The notes: generated by a model from the sequence alone, not told the origin. A DNA stretch of 63,257 nt, filler included, from Perkinsus chesapeaki ATCC PRA-425 (GCA_013115145.1; 4 parts of 4 records of this genome joined end to end with filler, not necessarily neighbours in it); one strand, 5' to 3'; shown: positions 21,191-33,476, counted from the first letter of the whole stretch. Program-made: numbers and translations.

Positions 21191-22817
21191 TAGGAAGATA
21201 TTTGGTCAGCAGTGCCGATGGTGGCAACAGTTGGGCATATTATGTACCTAAGGAACGATGGGCGTTTAGGTGCCTAATGTTACGTAGTGCGCACAGGAAG
21301 CTGCGACATGCAAGTCGGAACGCCACAGTAGAGAGAGCCATTGAATTTGGATTCTTTGCGCCATCTCTACGAAGGCTGGCAAACGATGTGCTGGCAGTAT
21401 GCGTCACATGCCAACTGAAGAACGCCAAGCGAGAATGGAGAATTCTGCCCGGGATCGCAGGAACGGGAGTCTCTGATTTATCGCCACAAAGTTTGCTGAA
21501 GAATGGCAAGGAACCGTTTTATGCGGTATCGGTGGACGCTATTACTTTGGGGTCAGGCCTTCTCTATTTATCGGTGGTCTGCCTAATGACATACAGTGTG
21601 GTTGGGGTGGCAATACCTGACCAGACGTCATCAAGTATCGCAGCGGCCATCAGACGAGCTCAGAGGAGAGAAGGGGGCTTCGCTGTAATAGTGGCCGATA
21701 ATGCGATCGCGAGAGATTCAGTGGCGAGAGATTCAGTGGCGAGAGATCCTGAGATAGCTGGATGGAATATCAAGTTTATACCAGCAAATCCAAGAGCACC
21801 ATGGACGACAGCAGCTGAGACTCATCATCGCAGCGCGGTTCGAGTCGCACGGATTATTCTGAGAAAGTATAGAGTATCCGATTGGAATCATGAAACGATG
21901 GCGACATTAAAGCAGGAGCTGGCTGATGAGATAACTTGGACGCTGAACAGGACGCCACTATCGTCGGCGGACATTAATGACCAAGGATATATCAGAGCTC
22001 TGACTCCGGATGATTTGAGGTATGGTTACATCCGCAGAGAGGGAGGCGGAGCTACGCTGATGGATAATGAGGTATCCTCTGAGGTAAGCAAATCCGAAGG
22101 TAAGTGGCTGAGGCGGCGGGAAGCAAATCTCCGGCGATTTTTGAACGATTTTTGGCCAGAGAAGCGCCGCAAAGTATTAGCATCATTGGGGCGAACGGAA
22201 TCAGTGAAGAAGGATTTTACTTTTCGAGTTGGAGATCCGGTGATGATTTATCAGCCGAGTCGGAAACATGATATGCTTTGGCGGACGGGCTGGATAGTGC
22301 AGTGTATTAGCACACGACGCTATCGAGTGCGTATCGTTGGAGGTAGAGGTGAGCGCATTACAGAGGAGAACCACTACAATTTATGCCCCCTGGAAATGCG
22401 ACGAGATTATGATGATATGCCACTTCCTGATAGAGCTGGAATGAGGATAAGATGCAGACTAACGCACGAAGATGGATCGCTACAGCATCACTGGGGTACC
22501 ATAGTTAAAGATTTGGCAGAGAAGGTACTCGTTTGCTGGGATGTATCGGATCCAGGACAGAGCGCGTTTGAGATGTTGAAGTTGGAAGAAGAAGACTGGG
22601 ACTTTGGTGATTCAGAAGTCGACACTTCCGAGAGGGAGGCGTGTCGCGGCACCGAATGAATCTATCATTTGGTGGCGAGCGCGAATCTAATCTTCCGGAT
22701 GCGGCATGAAGATATCTTGAAGATTGTATATGATTGATGTATTGACGATTGTGTTTCATTGTCGTAGTTCATTGGTAATGAACCGCATGCCGTGTAAACC
22801 GTAGCCTATTTGGCTCA
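21191..22817 (+). mobile_element. 3' part of a BEL/Pao-like LTR retrotransposon (integrase, putative PPT and putative 176-bp 3' LTR)
   Basis: Integrase ORF runs off the contig start. Purine tract GAGAGGGAGG at 22630-22639, then TG at 22642 and a CA at 22816-22817 next to the junction with host coding sequence. The 5' LTR is not in the window. Confidence 0.7.
21202..22659 (+). CDS. Retrotransposon pol C-terminus: H2C2 zinc finger + rve integrase + DUF5641-like + Tudor-like domain (5'-partial)
   Basis: HRKLRH...CVTC; VSVD...ADN...AETHH (D,D,E); BEL-type KFIP..APW, LNRTPL...LTP, FWPE..., GDPV...W.TGWI...LCPLE. Confidence 0.9.
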   Translation: MVSSADGGNSWAYYVPKERWAFRCLMLRSAHRKLRHASRNATVERAIEFGFFAPSLRRLANDVLAVCVTCQLKNAKREWRILPGIAGTGVSDLSPQSLLKNGKEPFYAVSVDAITLGSGLLYLSVVCLMTYSVVGVAIPDQTSSSIAAAIRRAQRREGGFAVIVADNAIARDSVARDSVARDPEIAGWNIKFIPANPRAPWTTAAETHHRSAVRVARIILRKYRVSDWNHETMATLKQELADEITWTLNRTPLSSADINDQGYIRALTPDDLRYGYIRREGGGATLMDNEVSSEVSKSEGKWLRRREANLRRFLNDFWPEKRRKVLASLGRTESVKKDFTFRVGDPVMIYQPSRKHDMLWRTGWIVQCISTRRYRVRIVGGRGERITEENHYNLCPLEMRRDYDDMPLPDRAGMRIRCRLTHEDGSLQHHWGTIVKDLAEKVLVCWDVSDPGQSAFEMLKLEEEDWDFGDSEVDTSEREACRGTE

Positions 22818-22819
22818 AG
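22798..22819 (+). other. Spliced-leader-like 22-mer ACCGTAGCCTATTTGGCTCAAG
   Basis: 20/22 identical to the dinoflagellate SL (DCCGTAGCCATTTTGGCTCAAG) and 19/22 to the P. marinus long SL as recalled (ACCGTAGCCATCTTGGCTCAAG). Followed by GG rather than GT, so not a canonical SL RNA gene. Confidence 0.85.
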
Positions 22820-22820
22820 G

Positions 22821-23598
22821 GACTTGTATTTTTTGCTCCACATCATGTCTAGTCGCGTTGGAGAACAGCTTGAGGATACAAAGACGGCCGAACACGACAC
22901 AGGGATTCCACGACGAAGATAACGAAAGAAAACTTCATCTCTCTTATTGATACCAATCGGATATTACGTGTCATGGAATGCTGCTTGACAAAGCTGGCTA
23001 CTTCGAAAACACACCAGAGGCGTTTGAAATAGTCACTTGACCAAAGTACAAGGAGCTCATTGGAACGGGCAAGATATGAACTGAGACCCCATATACCACG
23101 AAGCTTTGATACTTGATCAGTCTGGCATATACAACATTTATCAAGAAATACCATACTATCAATATAACCCGGCAATCGACATCCATAGAATAACGATAAT
23201 AGAAATGATAGAAGGGATGTTAGATACGCTATTAAAAAAGATAGGCTACTCGATAGTGTAGTGGACAGGCACGTTATAATGAATAATAGTGCGGAGTTCG
23301 CCACAATGTACGCCAGTCCTTTGTATTGAGCCATTGCCAATGCGATGTGCTTGAGAGTTGGATTGGCAGACCAAGAGTGGCTAACAAACGAATCCAACTG
23401 TCTGACCGGCCTTGAAAGGGCATATGTATCATCTGCGCCAACTGAATCTTTTAGAATATGCCTTTGATGGACAATCGTACTCAAAGGAACACCCCGAAGA
23501 AGTGACAGTGAGCCCGACGCATCCATAATCCTGTCTATTACATCCTTACGGCAAAGGACTTCTATCATTTCAATTTCGTCGACCACTTCTTCATTCAT
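22821..23598 (-). pseudogene. Truncated/chimeric HET/TIR-like membrane gene copy interrupted by the retrotransposon
   Basis: 22922-23631 is near-identical to 24782-25491. It continues into diverged paralog-like sequence (1-nt frameshift; VFGRLCILKLFSNATRHDVEQKIQ) up to the element end. Confidence 0.75.
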
Positions 23599-24042
23599 AC
23601 GTGCCACAAAAAGTAAACTGGAAAAGGCAAGATATTCACCTACTTACGACCCTTTTCTGAAGTACTCAGTTTTACCGATGTCTATGCAGTGGAACGAATG
23701 GATCTAACAGCAGCTAAAGGGTATGAGACCCCTACTCTTCCGGCCGGGAATATTGTGAAGCACATTAACTCAAAACCGTGTGAGGACGGAAATCATCAGT
23801 AAGTAGAATCAGGACGGGGGAGGAGCGGCAGTCTATTGCACAACAACTTCTCACTCAACAAGTGACAACGAACGTATAGGCTTGGCGTCACCAAGCCACT
23901 AAATAGTATGGACTGCCGCAGTACGGCAGTTATCGGAGGGAAATAATATAATGGTCGTCATTGAGCAAAAAACAACATTTGCCAACGACGTCGTGAACAC
24001 GCCTTTGCGGGGCTCATACCACATAAAGTAGATAGACATAAT

Positions 24043-25458
24043 TTATCGACACATGAGAAAGACAAGAAACAGTACCAGTAGCGGTATAATACACGTAGCT
24101 GAGGCGTAGTGCTCTGGGATAATACTCACCAAAGAGGTGTCGAATAGAATACATCCTCCAGCGACCAACATTATGAGCTCGTAAAGGGCGGCTATGGCAA
24201 CCATTCCGGCAGCCGCAATTGGTTTTGGTATGTGCCTAACCTCAAACAGCTTGTAGGTCACAAAGACTAGGAATGGTAAACGGCAGAGCAATAATACCAT
24301 TGTTGAAGCTAAGCAACGTAGAATTACCCACCATTGGGGGCCGCCAAACGGTACTGTGCTACAGCAGCATACCATCATACGACCAACACATGCCAGTTCC
24401 ATTGGGAGAGATGTTATAGCAAACGTGAAGAAGCCGATTGTCCAGGGACGATTCCGATTGGTAATGTACTCTTTGTTATCCCTAACGTATCTCTCGAAGG
24501 ATTCCAGCGACCCATACCAATTTCTAATAACCTCGTGAATGAGCAGCTTGTCCTCTTCAAGTGAGCATTCTCCATCATCAACACTGAATTGGCTGACTTG
24601 TCGGTCTAAGTCCAACCTATGAGGCAAATACTCGTAAACAATAGCCAGTCCCCAGCAACTTGCCAAGAGCAAGCTGACCCTCAACATCCCTAAATAGTAC
24701 GGCCGTTTCACAGAGGCTTCAAAGCTGAGGATATGAAGAATAGAAATGGTCACGACGGCCAGAACTTCAATGGTGAAAAAGACGAAAGAAAACTTCATCT
24801 GTCTTATTGATACCAATCGGATATTACGTGTCATGGAATGCTGCTTGACAAAGCTGGCTACTTCGAAAACACACCAGAGGCGTTTGAAATAGTCACTTGA
24901 CCAAAGTACAAGGAGCTCATTGGAACGGGCAAGATATGAACTGAGACCCCATATACCACGAAGCTTTGATACTTGATCAGTCTGGCATATACAACATTTA
25001 TCAAGAAATACCATACTATCAATATAACCAGGCAATCGACATCCATAGAATAACGATAATAGAAATGATAGAAGGGATGTTAGATACGCTATTAAAAAAG
25101 ATAGGCTACTCGATAGTGTAGTGGACAGGCACGTTATAATGAATAATAGTGCGGAGTTCGCCACAATGTACGCCAGTCCTTTGTATTGAGCCATTGCCAA
25201 TGCGATGTGCTTCAGAGTTGGATTGGCAGACCAAGAGTGGCTAACAAACGAATCCAACTGTCTGACCGGCCTTGAAAGGGCATATGTATCATCTGCGCCA
25301 ACTGAATCTTTTAGAATATGCCTTTGATGGACAATCGTACTCAAAGGAACACCCCGAAGAAGTGACAGTGAGCCCGACGCATCCATAATCCTGTCTATTA
25401 CATCCTTACGGCAAAGGACTTCTATCATTTCAATTTCGTCGACCACTTCTTCATTCAT
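24043..25458 (-). CDS. HET/TIR-like domain multi-pass membrane protein (copy A), intronless
   Basis: FVSHSW-[TM hairpin]-FLDKCCICQTD...SNELLVLWSSDYFKRLWCVFE, followed by several hydrophobic helices. The ORF track starts at GTG 25467; the first ATG is at 25458. Confidence 0.8.
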   Translation of the reverse strand: MNEEVVDEIEMIEVLCRKDVIDRIMDASGSLSLLRGVPLSTIVHQRHILKDSVGADDTYALSRPVRQLDSFVSHSWSANPTLKHIALAMAQYKGLAYIVANSALLFIITCLSTTLSSSLSFLIAYLTSLLSFLLSLFYGCRLPGYIDSMVFLDKCCICQTDQVSKLRGIWGLSSYLARSNELLVLWSSDYFKRLWCVFEVASFVKQHSMTRNIRLVSIRQMKFSFVFFTIEVLAVVTISILHILSFEASVKRPYYLGMLRVSLLLASCWGLAIVYEYLPHRLDLDRQVSQFSVDDGECSLEEDKLLIHEVIRNWYGSLESFERYVRDNKEYITNRNRPWTIGFFTFAITSLPMELACVGRMMVCCCSTVPFGGPQWWVILRCLASTMVLLLCRLPFLVFVTYKLFEVRHIPKPIAAAGMVAIAALYELIMLVAGGCILFDTSLVSIIPEHYASATCIIPLLVLFLVFLMCR

Positions 25459-25592
25459 ACGTGCCACAAAAAGTAAACTGGAAAAGGCAACACATTCTAT
25501 GAAGGCAAGCCAGATACAATTTTACGAGACTCTCCTTACGACTCATGTTTATTGTGTACAATATGTGAAATAGTTTTTACAAGAAAGTTAAA

Positions 25593-25648
25593 CAATCTCC
25601 ACCCGGGTCCGAACCTGGGCCTCCTGCCCATGATAATGACCGCCTACC
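25593..25648 (-). pseudogene. Degenerate tRNA-like element (A-box + B-box), element 2
   Basis: TAGTAGAATGG (A-box-like)...CCAGG-TTCGGAC-CCGGG-TGGAGAT at tRNA spacing. Acceptor and anticodon stems do not pair. Loosely tRNA-Val-like. Confidence 0.55.
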
Positions 25649-26023
25649 ATTCTACTAAAAATTCAGTCATAAATGTGACTTTCACATCGCACACGGTCAA
25701 CGACAGCGCAATCTAGGCTGCATCCTTTCAGTTGAATAGATTCCTTATCGGGATATCTGCGACCGTTTCTTAATCGCTTATTAAGACTGCGTCTTATGGT
25801 GCAAGAAGCTGCTCAGAGGCATAAGCGAATTCAAATGATTTCAATGCTCTTGAGGAAGTTTTGGTATAAAGCATTTTTGAGATCTTTACGAAAATGCTTT
25901 GAATTAGGCCTAAGGGTTACGAAGCCGCATCTTCGTTGCTTAGACAAGCAACTTCTTGCATACACTTCCTTCCAAAGCTTTTCTAGAGTTTGCGCAATCG
26001 TTACTCCCATCAGCTGCTTTCCA

Positions 26024-27259
26024 ATGGAAGCTTGGCTCAGCTCAGCAGACCTCGTCCGCCAAGTGGCATCGTCTTTGTATCAATCAGACGTGTGCAGTTT
26101 GTGGCGAACCTGTAAAACTGCCCGGGAACACCTTCGTGTCGATGGCCTGCTTTGGGTGCCAAATATTTTCCTACTCAATAGCGGAGATACCGCAAGATGC
26201 CTCGCTGAAGTGCACCCGGACTCTGTACAGTTTATGCGTATCGCCTTGTCTAAGTGCCGAGACGCTGCTATTCTGTTGCCATTCGCGCCTCACTTGAAGG
26301 GTTTGGGTATTGAACTCAGCAGCGCCTATTTACTAGAGGTCCTCACCGAGCAACTTCACGGTCATCTCGGGAAACTCGATCGGCTATGGGTGGAGTTCAT
26401 CGGTCACAGTCTAGCCCTGGACGGATCCATTGCTTCCCCAACGTCGATCGACGACAACATCGCTCTTCTAGGAAATGACTGTAGAGAAGTTTATGTGGCG
26501 TGCATTGGTGGCAGCATGCCTCTTCGCATGACCGCTAAAATAGGCACCAAGGTCACGAGGCTCACACTGGCCGGTAAATTCGGTGCTCGCACTCTTGAGC
26601 GCCTGAGCTGCCTTCCTCGTAACCAACTCATCTGCCTTGATCTAGCCAGGTGCCATTTGCCGCAGCGTCAGCCATTAGCGGCTTTTGCGGAAATTATTGA
26701 GTCTCATTCGGAGTCATTGAGCTATATGTCGTTCAAGTGCTCTCCTGTACCGAATGTATCAGAGATTCTGGGCGTTAGCGGAAGGCATCCACGATTGGTG
26801 TGTTTTATGAAACTTGTACGTGACCACGAAGAAGTTGTGTCGATTACTGTTTCCGATCTATCCCCTCGCGCAACATTTAGTGCCTCGTCTGGCAGTCGGG
26901 CTAAGTGCTTTGATCGATACGATCATTTGCAACTGCTCGGATGGGACGCATTTGGTGTGTTCGCCGCTACCTTCGGGAACTTGAAGTTCCGAACAGTGGA
27001 GGATATGTGGGCAGCTCTGAGCAGCGAATCACGGCACATAGTGGACTTGATGGCCAGCCGGATAAATGGGCAATACAACGAATATCGGAAACTGGTGCCG
27101 GCGGCAGGCACAGGACAGCCTGGTTTCGAGTTGTCTATGTCGAGCGACTCCGAGTCGGATATTACCGAGCTAAGTTCCTCGTGGCGTAGCGCTAGCGACA
27201 GGTTAGACTCTTCCTCATCAGAGGAGAGTGACGAATCAACGTCTTCCGATGGAGAGTAG
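26024..27259 (+). CDS. F-box-like/LRR-like protein with acidic Ser-rich tail; intronless
   Basis: MEAWLSSADLVRQVASSLYQSDVCSLWRTCK resembles an F-box. LxxLxL repeats follow (LKGLGIEL, LDRLWVE, VTRLTL, LICLDLARC). ATG 26024 follows a TTTTCTAG acceptor. Confidence 0.55.
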   Translation: MEAWLSSADLVRQVASSLYQSDVCSLWRTCKTAREHLRVDGLLWVPNIFLLNSGDTARCLAEVHPDSVQFMRIALSKCRDAAILLPFAPHLKGLGIELSSAYLLEVLTEQLHGHLGKLDRLWVEFIGHSLALDGSIASPTSIDDNIALLGNDCREVYVACIGGSMPLRMTAKIGTKVTRLTLAGKFGARTLERLSCLPRNQLICLDLARCHLPQRQPLAAFAEIIESHSESLSYMSFKCSPVPNVSEILGVSGRHPRLVCFMKLVRDHEEVVSITVSDLSPRATFSASSGSRAKCFDRYDHLQLLGWDAFGVFAATFGNLKFRTVEDMWAALSSESRHIVDLMASRINGQYNEYRKLVPAAGTGQPGFELSMSSDSESDITELSSSWRSASDRLDSSSSEESDESTSSDGE

Positions 27260-27707
27260 AAAACAAGTTGCGATGAATACGTAGATTGAGTTTGTAGTTC
27301 ACTAAAAGCATGTTTGGTCTTTTCTTTCATGCGTTCGTGTTGATGTGGTCAATAAAACATCTGAAACCTCGCATTACGGGTGATGAGTTACAGTCCAGGG
27401 CTCACTCACATTTACACTGATAACCAAAATATATAGTACAAGGGGTGGTCACTGAATAGCCGTAGAATGGTGGAACCAGTAATGCATTATGAAAAGACAA
27501 AGCTGATCCAGAAGCATACCACCCAATCACCGGCGTTCAAAATAACATGTTCAATATTCCTGGCTGGTGCTGGGTCAGAATCTACAGGAGCAACCCCCTG
27601 GAGACCTTGAAGCCAAGCAGAGCGAGATACAGCCACTTTCAGCGGCTGTTTGACAGCATAAGCCGAATAATAGAAGATACCATGGAGGCTGGCCCCAATG
27701 CCACCAG

Positions 27708-29111
27708 CTAGGCAGAGAAATGGGTCCACTTCAGCAGACCCAATGTTATGAACGGAAGTACGACCATGATCCATGCACATGGACGGACCGCAAATAGCAA
27801 TACTGTTGGCGAGTCAAATAGAAAAAAGGCTGCTTGCCCGGAGACGAACATCAATGCGCCATATGAAATGCCCAGTAATAAGATGATGAGCAGGATTATA
27901 CTTCTACCGAGAAATGTTTCACTGCCGAAGGCCCGGACGAGGCGGTACGAAGCCACCGTGAAAAGGGGCGTCCGACACATAAGCAGAATACTAACAGTTA
28001 TTGTGTCCCGGAGTATGATGTACCACGAATAACCAAGATCAACTTCAAGGCTAAAGGAAGAGAGACTCGCCGCAAGCCGAGGCCAGAAAACCAGTATATA
28101 GGGAAACATCACGACGCCTGCTACTTCCCTCGGCAAGGCGTCCTCTCGCTTTCTCATCATACTCCTCATACACGACCAACTATTCCGTACACAATCATTA
28201 AAGCTCCTATCTGAACCATACCACTCGTTTATTCGCAACCTTAGCATTTCGGTGTCTTCACTGAAGGTACACTCCGCTTCATCTACGGAGAACCTTTGTA
28301 CCTGCTTCTTCAGTGCCAACTTCGCGGGAACAAAGTAGAGGAGGACAATTAGACATACACCAACAGACATAAATACTTCAAAGAGAAAAAATACAATCGG
28401 GGGGGTCCAGGATTTCATGAGTTCCTCACATGGAGTTGGTATATAGAGCACCTCAATGACCAAAAGCCCTAAAATTTCTACCATGGCGATCAGATGTGCC
28501 AAGCGTGAAGTTAATATGGAGTAGCACCTGATGGAGCTCACGTTGTGGATATGGAGGAAGTTGGCATACTCAAAGACACACCAAAGCCTCGAGAAGTACT
28601 CGGGCGTCCAAAGGATAAGCAGCGTATCAGATCGATTAAGGTAGGCTTCCATGTTCTTCAACCCTTCCCTCTTCGCCTTCTCGTCAACTTGAGGTATACA
28701 GCATTTATCAAGGAACACCATTTTCTTGTTGGTTCGGCTTGGGATTAGATAACCAAACCACATACCGAGAAACATGGCAAACACACCGAGTACTTCCGTG
28801 GCTACAACAGCCTCTCTCTTGTAAGCGGGTAAGAAGTAAATACCGACTGATAATGGTATAACAGTGAGGAGCATTGCAATATAACCAAACTTGACATACA
28901 GAACGGTAACGAGCGTCATGTGCTTCCAGAAAGGGCTACCAGACCATGAGTGACTCAGAAATTCATCCAAGCTCTCGACTGGTTTAGACAACCTGTATGA
29001 TTCATCTGACGGCTTTGAAGTGCGCAACAAATACCATCTCCGAGTAACATCGTGTAAGTATACACCTCTCGTAGGCATCTCGCCTAGCTCGGCACTAGGT
29101 TTCAATGTCAT
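27708..29111 (-). CDS. HET/TIR-like domain multi-pass membrane protein (copy B), intronless
   Basis: FLSHSW...FLDKCCIPQVD...SDTLLILWTPEYFSRLWCVFE, FSVDEAEC..ED..LR.RINEWYGS, many TM segments. Confidence 0.8.
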   Translation of the reverse strand: MTLKPSAELGEMPTRGVYLHDVTRRWYLLRTSKPSDESYRLSKPVESLDEFLSHSWSGSPFWKHMTLVTVLYVKFGYIAMLLTVIPLSVGIYFLPAYKREAVVATEVLGVFAMFLGMWFGYLIPSRTNKKMVFLDKCCIPQVDEKAKREGLKNMEAYLNRSDTLLILWTPEYFSRLWCVFEYANFLHIHNVSSIRCYSILTSRLAHLIAMVEILGLLVIEVLYIPTPCEELMKSWTPPIVFFLFEVFMSVGVCLIVLLYFVPAKLALKKQVQRFSVDEAECTFSEDTEMLRLRINEWYGSDRSFNDCVRNSWSCMRSMMRKREDALPREVAGVVMFPYILVFWPRLAASLSSFSLEVDLGYSWYIILRDTITVSILLMCRTPLFTVASYRLVRAFGSETFLGRSIILLIILLLGISYGALMFVSGQAAFFLFDSPTVLLFAVRPCAWIMVVLPFITLGLLKWTHFSA

Positions 29112-29399
29112 ACAGGATTAAACAACGCCTGTGAATAATTGGTAATAAGTATGAGGCCAACTTTAGCGCGACAAAGAATCAAGAATTTCTTCCATCTGTG
29201 ACCCGGCTTGGCACTGGAGATGGATCTCCCTGTAAAGCCATGGTAATGTCAGAAGTGGTCTCGATCTTCTAGGCGATAATAAAGCTGTGTGTTGCTACCG
29301 CGACCTTCCGATTCGGAAGTTTTGAAGACTTCACGTGACACACAGACTGTGTGACACAGCATAGACAGGGAACCCTGTACGTCACGGCAGTGCATCAAA

Positions 29400-31100
29400 C
29401 TTTGAGGCGCGAAATTCGTGCCACGACTGCCTTGAGCCGAAGGTTTGAGGTCTCACAGAACTCAATACTTCATATATATAGAGCTATGTTAGTGAATCTT
29501 GCACACTTACTATGGCTTTTCAGCAGGAATATTTCGCCAGATAACCTTGTGTTTTCGGTGACGGACTTGTCACGCGGGAATGGTGGAAAGTAACCTAAAT
29601 GCTCAAGGGGTTCCCGGCGTCTCAGAGTTCTCAGGTGAATTTTCGCAGGCTCTGTGAGAAATATGATGCGGAACTCACCGCGGAGTGAGTATTTGGATTC
29701 GGGAGAACACGAACTACTATGACAAGCGCGGGGAAGAGTCTTGCATATAGCTTTGGCAGGGAAGGCTGTGCGATCGGAGACGAATATCATCTCGATATCC
29801 CTCCTGATAGCATCTAGGCGGACGGTACTGGAAGATCAAGGGCAACAACCTAGAAGGTGCACGATGTTCGCATGTCTCCCAGGCTACTAGTCATCAGCGC
29901 CATTAAAGTCATCAGTGATGACGTATTCGGATTTCAAACTTCAAACCCTTCGAGATGCGTAGGACCCTGGGCGTATCGCATAGTACCAGTAGCACCTTGA
30001 AGAGACGATCTCCGCACCCTCCTTCCGTAAGGTGCGAAACTCATAACATATCCCCCCGTAAGCAAGAGAGAAGGACTCCTTCCATGAAGGAGCTCCTCGA
30101 GCACCTCCCTCAAGGCAAAATCGCGGAGCTATGCGGCCCGCACTGAAAATTTTTCAGTGAAAAGCCGTCAAATATTGTCTTCGCCTTCATCTTGCTTCAC
30201 CAAGCAAATTTGGATAATCGAACAGCCTTATCTCTCAATGAGTATTCCCATATTGTTCAAAAGTTCGGTGGATCTTGTTGTTGCAGGTTGCGAGTGACAG
30301 AGCATACACCACCCGCGTAAAGGGTTGTAGGCGTATATTGATGAGGGTACCATGATGGTACTACCATCCCTACAGTACGGGTAACCCTCCTTCTTGCTAA
30401 GGAGTCCTTAGCCTAGGCCGTAAAGTGTGCTCGCAGCCCGAAGCAGGCGCCAAGGCGCCTGAGTGTCTCAATACCGGTAGCTCCGAGTTCATTCTAAGAG
30501 TTGTAGTGTTAGACACTCGAGATCGAATCTAGTACTATCAAAGGCGGCGAGTAGCGGCCCGCTACTAGCGGTCGGTGCTGCAGAAACTCCCGCCAGGGCT
30601 GGGGATCGCGATGGCATGACTTCAGAGACTGTCGTACAGTTGGACAAAATCCTTGACCATTAGATGGTCGATTCGGATCCTCGTCCGGGGCTTGGCCGGT
30701 CGTCTCGTCGTCAAAGGAGCGGTCTAGCCGGGTGAATAACTCTAGCCGCTGTCAAATCGATTACTTTGGAGTGTCGACAAGGTCGAGTCGACACACCCTA
30801 GATCAGCTCAGAGTTGGCAACTCTGACCTAGTCAGGTCACCCGAGGAAGCGACTCAGGCCCGTGAGACCGCGCGGAAGGCAGCGTGGCAGGCAATCAGCA
30901 GCGAGGGGTAGATCTTCTCTGGTGAGCCTCTCGCGTTTGGTAACTGCGGATTCAGCAGTGCGGAACAGTCGCTTCTATCGAAACTAATGCCAGCGTGGAT
31001 ACCGATTGCGGTGTTCATGCAGCGCCTGGTACCGATCGGGTCCAGTAGGTGCCGATAAGGCAACCAGAAGGAACCTGTCAACCACGCTACTTGAGTACTA
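29400..31100. mobile_element. Probable decayed repeat/retroelement relic (hairpin-rich region plus interrupted gag-like frame on +)
   Basis: No intact ORF. The + frame at about 30616-31090 is protein-like but broken by TAG/TGA stops. Many short palindromes. Family not identified. Confidence 0.3.
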
Positions 31101-31449
31101 AAATAGAAACTGTTAGCGGAGCCAAGGTCACTTTACCACCTGATTCCCATTGACACTTAAAGAAGACGACAAATTATCGAAATTTATTGAAAATAAAAGA
31201 CGTATACGAATGCAGCAGTGAGTGGACTCCACGACCCTTACTCATCAAAGATCGATCTTTGACGCTTTAGTGATGTAGTGCTAGTTCGAGAACGGAATTT
31301 CGTCGTGATATTCCCGAGACGGAGAAATCCCTGAGCAGTCAACAACCAGCAATTTCAGTCCAACATACTCAATGGTGAACACGCCAATGAAAATGTGTCC
31401 AATAGACTGATACAAGTGCGATAATAGGAAGGATAACGAAAAGCCACGC

Positions 31450-32793
31450 CTACGGGCTATTCAAGAACAACACCATAGTTGGTGGTCCATAGAAGAAGAG
31501 AACGCCTTGCGCTCCAATAAATTGGCCAACGCTATAAAGCAAGGCGAATGATACGAGAGCTGAGGTACCGAAGCACTTGGCTAGAGTGCTCTTACGTTCT
31601 AGGACACTGCCTGTGCAATACGATATAACAACGAAGAGAGGCACGCGGCATGCAAGCAATACATTCAGCACAAGTGTACTTCGAATAATGAGAGTCCACG
31701 AGTACTCCGGGTATTCGTTGTTCCAGGCTATAGCACACGCCAGACGAGGCCACAGAGCCATTACATATGGAAACATCACGAAGGCTACTACCTGAACCGG
31801 TAATGCCGGATCAGAAATTTTCATTGCGAGGCTTATTCGTGACCAGCTACTCCGTAGACACTCATCAAAGTTTTCCTGTGATCCATACCACTCGGATATT
31901 CGAGAGCTCAGCATTGTAGTATCTTCGGCAAGCGTGCAGTGCGCTGCACTCATTGAAAACTGCTGAATTTGCTTATTCAACTCCCTCTTCGCAGGAAGAC
32001 AGAAGAGAAGCACAATTACACATACACCAACGCTCAATGCGACCTCGGTCACGGACCAGCAAATGGAGGGTATCCACAATTTTATTTGCGAGCCCCTCGA
32101 AATTACGGCGTTTGCGATTTCCACAATGAGAACACACGCGACCTCCCACCAGACAACCACATGATAAAACTGCATGAACCAAGCCGACCAGCACAGAATC
32201 GAGTCGGGTCCATGACTACGAAGGTAGCTAGCCAACTCAAAGACACACCAAAGCCTCGAGAAGTACTCGGGCGTCCAAAGGATAAGCAGCGTATCAGATA
32301 GACTAAGGTAGGCTTCCATGTTCTTCAACCCTTCCCTCTTCGCCTCTTCGTCAACTTGAGGTATACAGCATTTATCAAGGAACACCATTTTCTTGTTGGT
32401 TCGGCTTGGGATTAGATAACCAAACCACATACCGAGAAACATGGCAAACACACCGAGTACTTCCGTGGCTACAACAGCCTCTGTCTTGTAAGCGGGTAAG
32501 AAGTAAATACCGACTGATAATGGTATAACAGTGAGGAGCATTGCAATATAACCAAACTTGACATACAGAACGGTAACGAGTGTCATATGCTTCCAGAAAG
32601 GGCTACCAGACCATGAGTGACTTAAAAATAGATCTAACTTCTCGACTTGTCTCGACAGCTCGTAAGTTTGCCCGGATGCCTCCGAGTTGTAAAATAAATA
32701 ACACCTGGCGGTGACGTTATCCAAAGTGATTCCTCTAATATGAGACTCGAGCACTGGTCTCCCGTTCGACCGGTCCAAAGTTCGAAAATCCAT
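31450..32793 (-). CDS. HET/TIR-like domain multi-pass membrane protein (copy C); premature TAG before last TM helix
   Basis: Same motifs as copy B. The frame continues past TAG 31452-31450 as AWLFVILPIIALVSVYWTHF.. to TGA at 31369. Confidence 0.8.
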   Translation of the reverse strand: MDFRTLDRSNGRPVLESHIRGITLDNVTARCYLFYNSEASGQTYELSRQVEKLDLFLSHSWSGSPFWKHMTLVTVLYVKFGYIAMLLTVIPLSVGIYFLPAYKTEAVVATEVLGVFAMFLGMWFGYLIPSRTNKKMVFLDKCCIPQVDEEAKREGLKNMEAYLSLSDTLLILWTPEYFSRLWCVFELASYLRSHGPDSILCWSAWFMQFYHVVVWWEVACVLIVEIANAVISRGSQIKLWIPSICWSVTEVALSVGVCVIVLLFCLPAKRELNKQIQQFSMSAAHCTLAEDTTMLSSRISEWYGSQENFDECLRSSWSRISLAMKISDPALPVQVVAFVMFPYVMALWPRLACAIAWNNEYPEYSWTLIIRSTLVLNVLLACRVPLFVVISYCTGSVLERKSTLAKCFGTSALVSFALLYSVGQFIGAQGVLFFYGPPTMVLFLNSP

Positions 32794-33476
32794 GAAAAGA
32801 AAGGTCACACGTCACACGTCACACGTCGCACTTCTCATGCCACTACTGGGCTCCGCGGAATGTTTCCAGACTCCCGGCTTCAAGCGCAAGCAGGTGGCAA
32901 GAATGGTATCGAATGATCTTTTCACCATCCTGCTCGGGAGCTACAAAGGTACCAAACCCCATTCGACCACCGGAAGAGGACTCCCCCACGGAGTTATACC
33001 ACCCATTGAAAGGCAGTCATACTGATCGTAACGGGACAGGGCGTGCGGTCAGGCAGCTCCTGGCAAAACTCCTGTGTCTACCCGAGTCAGCTAACCCGAC
33101 TCAGTTTTTTTTTAGAAAAAATGGAGGCTCTACGACTGAAGAATCTGTGGTCTCCTGTTTTTTTTGCGCGCGGGAAAGGCGAAGCACAATGTGCTCACCA
33201 CATGTGAAGATGCGCCTTCTTCCCCGCATCCGTATTGCTCGGAGGAAGAACAGACAGTGAATGTAGTGGGCTCCGCTCAGCGAAGGTGAAATCAGTTCTT
33301 GTCTTGAGCGGCGTGGGTCGCGCCGAAGCACATATTAGTAGCACAATATCTCTGTTGGTTGTTCAATTCTTGCACTGCGTTTCGACTTGCCCCGAATACT
33401 TGGTCTACACCTTTTCAACGCCTATTTCGACAATAGTAACTTCTATTTCGACAGGCGAGCGAGATTTATGTTAAGA

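Follow-up and report, generated by a model that had tools for sequence, protein, structure and literature searches.

A cluster of related genes in Perkinsus chesapeaki ATCC PRA-425 (GCA_013115145.1) appears to encode proteins in which a TIR domain is interrupted twice by membrane hairpins. The genes lie in a stretch of 63,257 nucleotides made of four parts joined with filler, referred to here as the window. The best explanation of these proteins is that they are membrane-integrated TIR enzymes that cleave nicotinamide adenine dinucleotide (NAD+) and are regulated through their membrane domain, possibly in conflict or cell death. A rough probability of 0.55 is given to this reading, which draws on a structure model and on analogy with characterized TIR enzymes. 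In the piece examined (21191-33476, 12,286 nt, no N), the listing of open reading frames (ORFs) gives four related minus-strand frames, copies A to D, at the sites named by an earlier reading of the DNA made without database searches (the sequence-only reading). Residue numbers are those of copy B throughout.

24043-25467, minus strand: copy A, an intact, divergent paralogue; 474 residues from GTG, 471 from the first ATG (codon 4, nt 25458)
27708-29111, minus strand: copy B, intact, 467 residues; the modelled protein
31450-32808 (ORF) or 31372-32793 with its remnant, minus strand: copy C, 447 codons from the ATG at 32793 to an in-frame stop
22922-23637 (duplicate; listed ORF 22849-23607, 252 residues), minus strand: copy D, a truncated duplicate of the 5' part of copy A

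Model-based evidence for a split TIR fold

Copy B was modelled with AlphaFold2 from a 15-sequence alignment (predicted local distance difference test, pLDDT, 81.4; predicted template modelling score, pTM, 0.81). The model was compared with 48,161 PDB representatives by VIA-align, a search independent of Foldseek. More than 25 solved TIR entries aligned with it at Z 5.2-8.5 over 111-144 residues, the targets being 125-175 residues long. The first pass returned the RPP1 TIR (Z 8.0, 138 residues aligned), IL-18Rβ (7.6) and SpbK (7.3), and the second returned RPP1 (8.5, 136 aligned), RPPT-TIR (8.4, 144 of 165) and RUN1 (8.3). SARM1 aligned at Z 7.5 (122 of 140 residues, root-mean-square deviation 3.3), MyD88 at 6.8-7.8 and ThsB at 6.0. 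RPS4, AtTIR, TRR-2, TIRAP, TIR-1 and TRAM were also among the TIRs returned, and nucleoside 2-deoxyribosyltransferase, which is related in fold, scored 6.3. Additionally, the structural neighbours of an independent ESM Atlas model of this protein include ThsB-TIR and plant TNL clusters. The modelling therefore supports the presence in copy B of a flavodoxin-like TIR fold with a five-stranded parallel sheet, βA-βE. A prediction of the N-terminal 196 residues alone, made with no alignment, reached pLDDT 48 and pTM 0.24 and was not used.

The TIR alignments start at residues 44-48 and stop at 319-335. Because only about 150 residues of this span lie outside both inserts, the alignments draw on essentially all three TIR pieces. 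The same span indicates that the fold is split twice and that the FS...EC..ED...WYGS block is its C-terminal part (βE/αE). The usual single contiguous domain of about 125-180 residues is not what is found in copy B; the pieces are 44-59, 126-198 and 273-333, and the inserts of 66 and 74 residues carry two hydrophobic helices each. The segments of the modelled protein are as follows.

28935..28982, minus strand: TIR piece 1, residues 44-59; βA with F.SHSW, DSSP strand 48-54
28737..28934, minus strand: membrane hairpin 1, residues 60-125, at the TIR αA position; predicted helices 60-93 and 98-122
28518..28736, minus strand: TIR core, residues 126-198; βB (VFLD...I.Q.D), αB, βC, αC (RLWCVFE) and βD
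28569..28571, minus strand: codon of Glu181, at the TIR catalytic-glutamate position (WxxxE motif)
28296..28517, minus strand: membrane hairpin 2, residues 199-272, at the TIR αD position; predicted helices 199-223 and 231-272
28137..28295, minus strand: TIR piece 3, residues 273-325, with F......C....D and WYGS..F; βE/αE and the following helices
27711..28136, minus strand: C-terminal four-helix block, residues 326-467; predicted helices 328-351, 363-395, 400-424 and 446-464

About 45 residues precede βA. In the model, βA (48-54) is followed after hairpin 1 by βB (131-133), αB (144-152), βC (161-168), αC with RLWCVFE (176-188) and βD (194-198). After hairpin 2 come a short strand near residue 280 and helices across 284-321, which hold the F......C....D and WYGS..F motifs.

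The sequence-only reading had proposed a TIR-like enzyme and had staked the idea on whether a TIR fold would be predicted. The model aligns with TIRs at Z up to 8.5, TIR_2 and TIR are the sole recurrent Pfam families, and E181 is kept in 143 of 144 distant relatives (see below), so that the TIR reading is supported. That reading also had the domain split by one membrane hairpin and listed FS...EC..ED...WYGS as a conserved segment. The split holds, with two hairpins at the αA and αD positions rather than one, and the segment is indeed conserved and belongs to the same TIR fold.

Conservation of the putative active site

Conservation was measured over 144 distant cluster representatives, and 86 family members were aligned, 80 of them distant and mostly 18-25% identical to copy B. 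Over the 144 representatives, the motifs F.SH.W, F.D...I.Q, W..Y..RLWC..E and F......C....D are 96-100% conserved. F51, W56, D135, Q141, W177, C178, D286 and F304 are present in all, S53, H54, K63, F133 and R175 in 98-99%, and W168, F274 and C281 in 96-98%. Position 181 is Glu in 143 of the 144. In contrast, the membrane parts average 25-33% conservation (C-terminal block mean 25%). Four helices follow the TIR, and the proposal that the TIR is coupled to a variable multi-pass part, also made from the sequence alone, is in line with both observations.

The pair of features that marks the catalytic TIR class, the αC Glu within W...E and the βB F.D block, is present. In SARM1 and in plant and bacterial TIRs, the Trp and Glu of the W...E motif are needed for NAD+ cleavage and product cyclisation (10.1101/2022.05.07.491051). 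Since the Trp and Glu are effectively invariant in the family and the βA and βB blocks accompany them, an NAD+-directed enzyme would be the most economical reading.

Predicted membrane layout

The architecture was checked in 101 representatives that carry all four motifs in order. Insert 1 has a median of 91 residues and two hydrophobic segments in 79 of the 101; for insert 2 the median is 87 residues, with two segments in 72, and for the tail 181 residues, with four segments in 50. The layout of 2+2+4 helices thus recurs across the family. In copy B, hydropathy peaks at 1.9-2.1 in hairpin 1, and the C-terminal block is also hydrophobic. The loops at the hairpin tips are short (medians 22 and 11 residues), and they hold 0.05-0.06 Lys plus Arg per residue, against 0.12-0.22 on the TIR-side flanks. 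By the positive-inside rule this asymmetry fits a cytosolic TIR, and because each insert has an even number of helices, the three TIR pieces would lie on the same, Lys/Arg-rich side. We infer on these grounds that the eight predicted helices are inserted in the membrane with this topology. Charged residues occur inside the predicted membrane helices of some copies.

The six helices of residues 184-466 of copy B (27714-28562, minus strand) repeatedly matched ABC-2-type or related exporters in VIA-align: ABCG16, ABCG2, ABCG1 and ABCG5/8 at Z 8.3-9.2, LptF/G at 7.8, CcmB at 7.5 and NosY at 7.0, over about 200-230 residues. These values of 7.0-9.2 lie under the VIA-align noise level for helical bundles (about 13), and there is neither an ATPase domain nor a sequence signal. 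A relationship of the membrane part to ABC-2 transporters is therefore probably noise, although the recurrence of one transporter class is curious.

Sequence evidence for TIR and HET

Pfam searches of the four copies returned only sub-threshold TIR_2 matches (E 0.04-0.16), the one in copy B lying in the TIR core. Among relatives, TIR_2 was matched in 13 of 15 and TIR in 5 of 15 at E<=1, and at E<=0.01 in 18 and 12 of 86, respectively; no other family recurs. One P. chesapeaki relative, P0053, exceeds the PF01582 cut-off, with 25 bits against 21.3. In profile searches of the PDB, the best match of the paralogue profile was the IL1RAPL2 TIR (E 0.002), and the 86-sequence profile gave weak matches to AtTIR and RPPT-TIR (E about 0.4; 0.36-0.41 with richer profiles, no improvement). 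The matches to IL1RAPL2 and AtTIR take in the TIR core (residues 126-198). The W-C-x-x-E of the family falls in register with the TIR W...E, which reads WCLDEL in AtTIR and W.IFEL in IL1RAPL2. The top PDB match of the 86-sequence profile, a designed ion channel (E 0.022), was rejected as a compositional match to low-complexity hydrophobic helices.

The three blocks, ..LS..W,.D..CI.Q.D and YF.R.W...E, are spelled in a very HET-like way by comparison with the HET consensus. Membership of HET (PF06985) was nevertheless rejected, the best E being 0.04, with matches in 3 of 15 members and in 0 of 86 at E<=0.01. By Pfam scoring the family is nearer TIR than HET. The sequence-only reading had recognized both TIR and fungal HET core motifs, and the double resemblance fits the remote homology of HET and TIR, detected with hidden Markov models (HMMs) over the region up to αC, in a study that also reported HET homologues in haptophytes and stramenopiles (PMC4986451). 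HET genes are described as multi-copy, fast-evolving conflict genes (PMC10890737).

Gene copies and their turnover

The copies match one another and Perkinsus proteins at E 1e-151 to 1e-164, a homology well above chance. At the protein level, identity is 55-56% between B and C and 30-32% between A and either of them, and D shares 94% with the N-terminal half of A. The nearest named relatives are from P. chesapeaki itself, copy C being 76% identical to P0002 and 74% to P0003, and P. olseni proteins are 40-45% identical to the copies. Because the frames are colinear, at full length, with transcript-derived relatives, they are taken as complete intronless genes. Three long intronless paralogues and a broken copy on the minus strand had been described from the sequence alone, with the motifs F(L/V)SHSW, FLDKCCI.Q.D, RLWCVFE and FS...WYGS..F and further membrane helices. 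The frames are there, and all of these motifs and helices are present, the motifs being invariant across the copies in the alignment. Of the three long paralogues, A and B are intact as described, but copy C is cut by an in-frame stop at 31450-31452 that removes its last predicted membrane helix. The frame runs for 26 more codons past the stop (31372-31449), which encode a remnant of this helix and match the C-terminus of P0002; P0003 was also compared. In a tblastn search, the alignment of P0002 (76% identity) continues across the stop.

Copy D arose very recently by duplication of the 5' part of copy A. Its 716 bp are 99.3% identical to 24782-25497 (blastn), that is, to the first 228 codons of A and 30 nt upstream, and beyond the duplicated part its ORF ends in unrelated sequence.

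A third kind of change is seen between B and C. A tract of 436 bp (28555-28990 in B, 32222-32657 in C), which covers βA, hairpin 1 and the TIR core, is 95% identical in nucleotides (blastn). Synonymous divergence (dS, Nei-Gojobori) is 0.044 over residues 60-125 and 0.26 over residues 126-198, and is saturated elsewhere. The low silent divergence here against saturation elsewhere points to gene conversion, which would homogenise these three parts of the two genes. Strong purifying selection also acts on the tract, because the same protein stretch is 97-98% identical in P0002.

Copy C matches its P. chesapeaki orthologue at 100% identity in βA, 97% in hairpin 1 and 97% in the TIR core, and at 68% in hairpin 2, 77% in the C-terminal TIR piece and 59% in the last four helices. 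Similarly, the adjacent P. olseni paralogues P0005 and P0006 (FOZ60_000178/179) are 91-100% identical in each region except hairpin 2, at 65%, and their differences cluster at its outward tip. Hairpin 2 is the most variable part between close paralogues. Its tip is a candidate hypervariable recognition patch, or may instead be a patch converted from a third paralogue.

Family size and spread

The family is large. A profile search of 1.84 billion cluster representatives (clusters at 50% identity) found 5695 clusters at E<=1e-3, 3453 at E<=1e-10 and 1603 at E<=1e-30, and nearly all of the top 150 cluster matches are full-length proteins of 450-600 residues. The named members are from P. chesapeaki, P. 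olseni and the dinoflagellates Effrenium voratum, Symbiodinium natans, Symbiodinium sp. CCMP2456, Durusdinium trenchii, Ansanella granifera and Gymnodinium catenatum, and related clusters are labelled haptophyte by the ESM Atlas. Some members come from MMETSP or EukProt transcripts, so the family is expressed. In P. chesapeaki (FOL47_001224-26), P. olseni (FOZ60_000178-79) and E. voratum (CAJ1407514-18), members have consecutive locus tags or accessions, which suggests that they lie in tandem. In the last of these apparent arrays, the proteins (P0018, P0159-P0161) have C-terminal extensions of about 400-500 residues; in P0018 this part shows a repetitive match of the Fibrinogen_BP type that stays below threshold (E 3e-9, 36 bits against 50). 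In further long relatives, of 700-840 residues, it is the N-terminus that is extended, with no Pfam match.

Two relatives carry the UniRef label 'TIR domain-containing protein', so the link to TIR is not wholly new. In the literature searched, neither the eight-helix architecture with its two interruptions nor the number of relatives is described; nor was any description found there of a TIR domain interrupted by membrane hairpins. Despite the size of the family, its expression and its intact-looking catalytic site, its members are unnamed or have only an automatic TIR label. To our knowledge, almost nothing is known of TIR enzymes in the protists that dominate marine plankton, including coral symbionts and shellfish parasites. 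The nearest precedent is a set of TIR proteins of G. huxleyi with multiple N-terminal membrane helices (PMC12489294).

Proposed mechanism and its alternatives

Under the favoured reading, these integral membrane proteins of about 470 residues would hold a cytosolic catalytic TIR unit threaded through a membrane domain. The order would be βA, a hairpin in place of αA, βB-αB-βC-αC-βD with the F.D, W and Glu active-site positions, a hairpin in place of αD, βE/αE and four helices. The TIR unit would cleave NAD+ or make an NAD+-derived signal, as do SARM1, plant TIRs and the bacterial Thoeris and AbTir TIRs, and the membrane domain would set its activity. The helices at the αA and αD positions, which normally contribute to TIR-TIR contacts, would here be continuous with membrane helices, and because of this continuity the membrane bundle would be in a good position to govern the active site. 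In response to a ligand, a membrane disturbance or a partner protein, the variable helices and outward loops may pack or oligomerise and in this way assemble or release that site. The tandem arrays, recent duplication, decay, conversion tract and variable hairpin-2 tip would fit a role in conflict better than one in housekeeping, which is a matter of fit and not of proof.

Several observations weigh against this reading. A check with AlphaFold and Foldseek had been suggested from the sequence alone; with the inserts kept, AlphaFold2 was confident and VIA-align gave TIRs, but Foldseek with the whole model found nothing in the PDB at E<=0.001. The sole soluble-domain rows that Foldseek returned were TIRs, at probability 0.4-0.75, and its lack of significance is attributed to the inserts, which interrupt local alignment. 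Values of Z 7-8.5 lie in the range that VIA-align warns is common for models with no clear match; here, though, the TIR entries that span most of the domain are independent and number in the dozens. The copies in the window score 12.9-14.9 bits against the TIR_2 cut-off of 28, and none reaches it, which is explained by the breaks that the inserts make in the HMM alignment. Conservation by itself is not proof of catalysis, because the WC..E glutamate is also retained in animal TIRs that are not enzymes. The cluster is partly in decay: of the three full-length copies one is cut by a premature stop, and a further copy is a fragment. Finally, the variable patch is known only from protein-level comparison, and the link to immunity consists of family dynamics and analogy.

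A bolder form of the proposal is tentative. The family may represent a new class of transmembrane signal-transducing enzyme, in which a TIR active site is mechanically coupled to an eight-helix bundle and membrane events such as virus entry, ligand binding or damage switch NAD+ cleavage or a nucleotide signal. If true, dinoflagellates, perkinsids and haptophytes would have in it a major family of innate-immunity or cell-death receptors that has so far gone unrecognised. Alternatively, it may be the ADP-ribosyl cyclase of these lineages. For an enzyme of any kind it is unusual that the catalytic domain is interleaved with membrane hairpins, and this layout suggests that a membrane event could act directly on NAD+ chemistry. 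Provided that it is active, the family could be tested as a candidate in the antiviral or cell-death signalling of dinoflagellates, haptophytes and Perkinsus, and would add a new principle of TIR regulation.

It is unlikely that the TIR is a non-catalytic assembly or adaptor domain of a membrane receptor that recruits TIR or HET-like proteins with no cleavage, as in TLR/IL-1R signalling. The best PDB sequence match is a TIR of the IL-1R family, the TIRs of MyD88, TIRAP, TRAM and IL-18Rβ score on a par with enzymatic ones, and WC..E also occurs in animal scaffold TIRs, all of which would suit an adaptor. However, D135, Q141, W177, C178, E181, K63 and D286 are near-invariant at about 20% identity, which is typical of an active site and not of a contact surface. 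Moreover, αA and αD, which make many TIR-TIR contacts, are replaced by membrane hairpins, and no partner TIR gene lies within the piece 21191-33476.

No better placed is a housekeeping second-messenger synthase, a membrane enzyme of the ADP-ribosyl-cyclase type that would make Ca2+ signals like cyclic ADP-ribose (cADPR) or nicotinic acid adenine dinucleotide phosphate (NAADP), with the membrane domain serving only for organelle placement. Such an enzyme would show the same conservation of the catalytic site, the family is very large and expressed (MMETSP, EukProt), and SARM1-type TIRs can produce cADPR (10.1101/2022.05.07.491051). The many divergent tandem copies, pseudogenes, conversion tracts and a hypervariable loop would be unexpected for it, and so would the poor conservation of the membrane part.

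A channel or transporter with a TIR-like nucleotide-binding regulatory module, comparable to TRPM2-type channels or ABC-2-type exporters, is quite improbable. The resemblance of residues 184-466 to the membrane domains of ABCG, LptF/G, NosY and CcmB and the charged residues within the predicted helices speak for it, but the former falls below the noise level for helical bundles and comes with no ATPase domain. In addition, no membrane-helix residue except at boundary positions is conserved at >=60%, all conserved residues being in the TIR pieces. Least probable of all is a spurious resemblance, in which a lineage-specific membrane family with an unrelated α/β domain carries chance motifs: the copies do lie under all curated thresholds, with Foldseek non-significant and PDB profile matches at E 0.002-0.4, but AlphaFold2 with VIA-align, the ESM Atlas neighbours, Pfam TIR/TIR_2 (one match above threshold) and three TIR blocks in order with the Glu in register all converge.

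Neighbouring sequence

Adjoining copy D, a 485-codon plus-strand frame enters from the left edge of the piece (21202-22659). It has a sub-threshold Pfam match to Integrase_H2C2 (E 4e-4, 20.8 bits against a cut-off of 25.5) and is probably a remnant of a retrotransposon pol gene. Because this integrase-like frame lies about 260 nt from the breakpoint of homology in copy D, a retroelement may have taken part in the breakage.

A 487-residue ORF on the plus strand (25796-27259) is transcribed away from copy A, with about 330 bp between the starts. It has a Ser/Asp/Glu-rich tail and leucine-rich stretches but no Pfam match, and an ESM Atlas feature search gave only a weak F-box lead (score 0.90, few shared features). 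The 2.3-kb spacer between B and C (29112-31449) shows no trace of the family by tblastn and holds only two short ORFs of >=80 residues, neither longer than 106 residues; its G+C content, 49-52%, is slightly above that of the genes.

Comparison with known systems

Like the TLR and IL-1R receptors, these are membrane proteins with a cytosolic TIR, here a predicted one. Those receptors cross the membrane once, carry a large LRR or Ig ectodomain and have their contiguous TIR at the C-terminus, whereas the proteins described here have eight predicted helices, short loops, no LRR or Ig match and an N-terminal TIR interleaved with the helices. HET proteins differ in being soluble, often linked to NLR or lectin domains, and free of membrane hairpins.

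SARM1 is a eukaryotic cell-death enzyme of the mitochondrial outer membrane. It has the order ARM-SAM-SAM-TIR and is regulated by an ARM domain that senses nicotinamide mononucleotide (NMN) and NAD+ and by a SAM octamer. It resembles the family in its structural match (Z 7.5) and its W...E active-site motif, but there are no membrane helices within its TIR, and the copies have no Pfam match to ARM or SAM.

The best structural matches are plant TIRs (RPP1, RUN1, RPS4, RPPT-TIR and AtTIR; Z 8.0-8.5 over 130-144 residues), which share ..WC..EL with the catalytic Glu in αC, as well as the βA (F.S) and βB (F.D) blocks. Identity to them is only 11-15%, and they are contiguous, soluble domains of about 160-180 residues, either free or fused to NB-ARC-LRR. 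In contrast, the TIR of the present family is interrupted twice and followed by four helices, with neither NB-ARC nor LRR.

The solved bacterial defence TIRs that were matched are likewise contiguous and soluble, whereas the named members here are eukaryotic and lack the operon context of a two-gene sensor-effector pair. Many bacterial TIRs begin in a way that resembles the F.SH start seen here. Bacterial TIR defence, exemplified by ThsB of Thoeris, SpbK and AbTir, provides structural matches at Z 6.0-7.3, and its NAD+-based logic of abortive infection is the model for the role proposed here.

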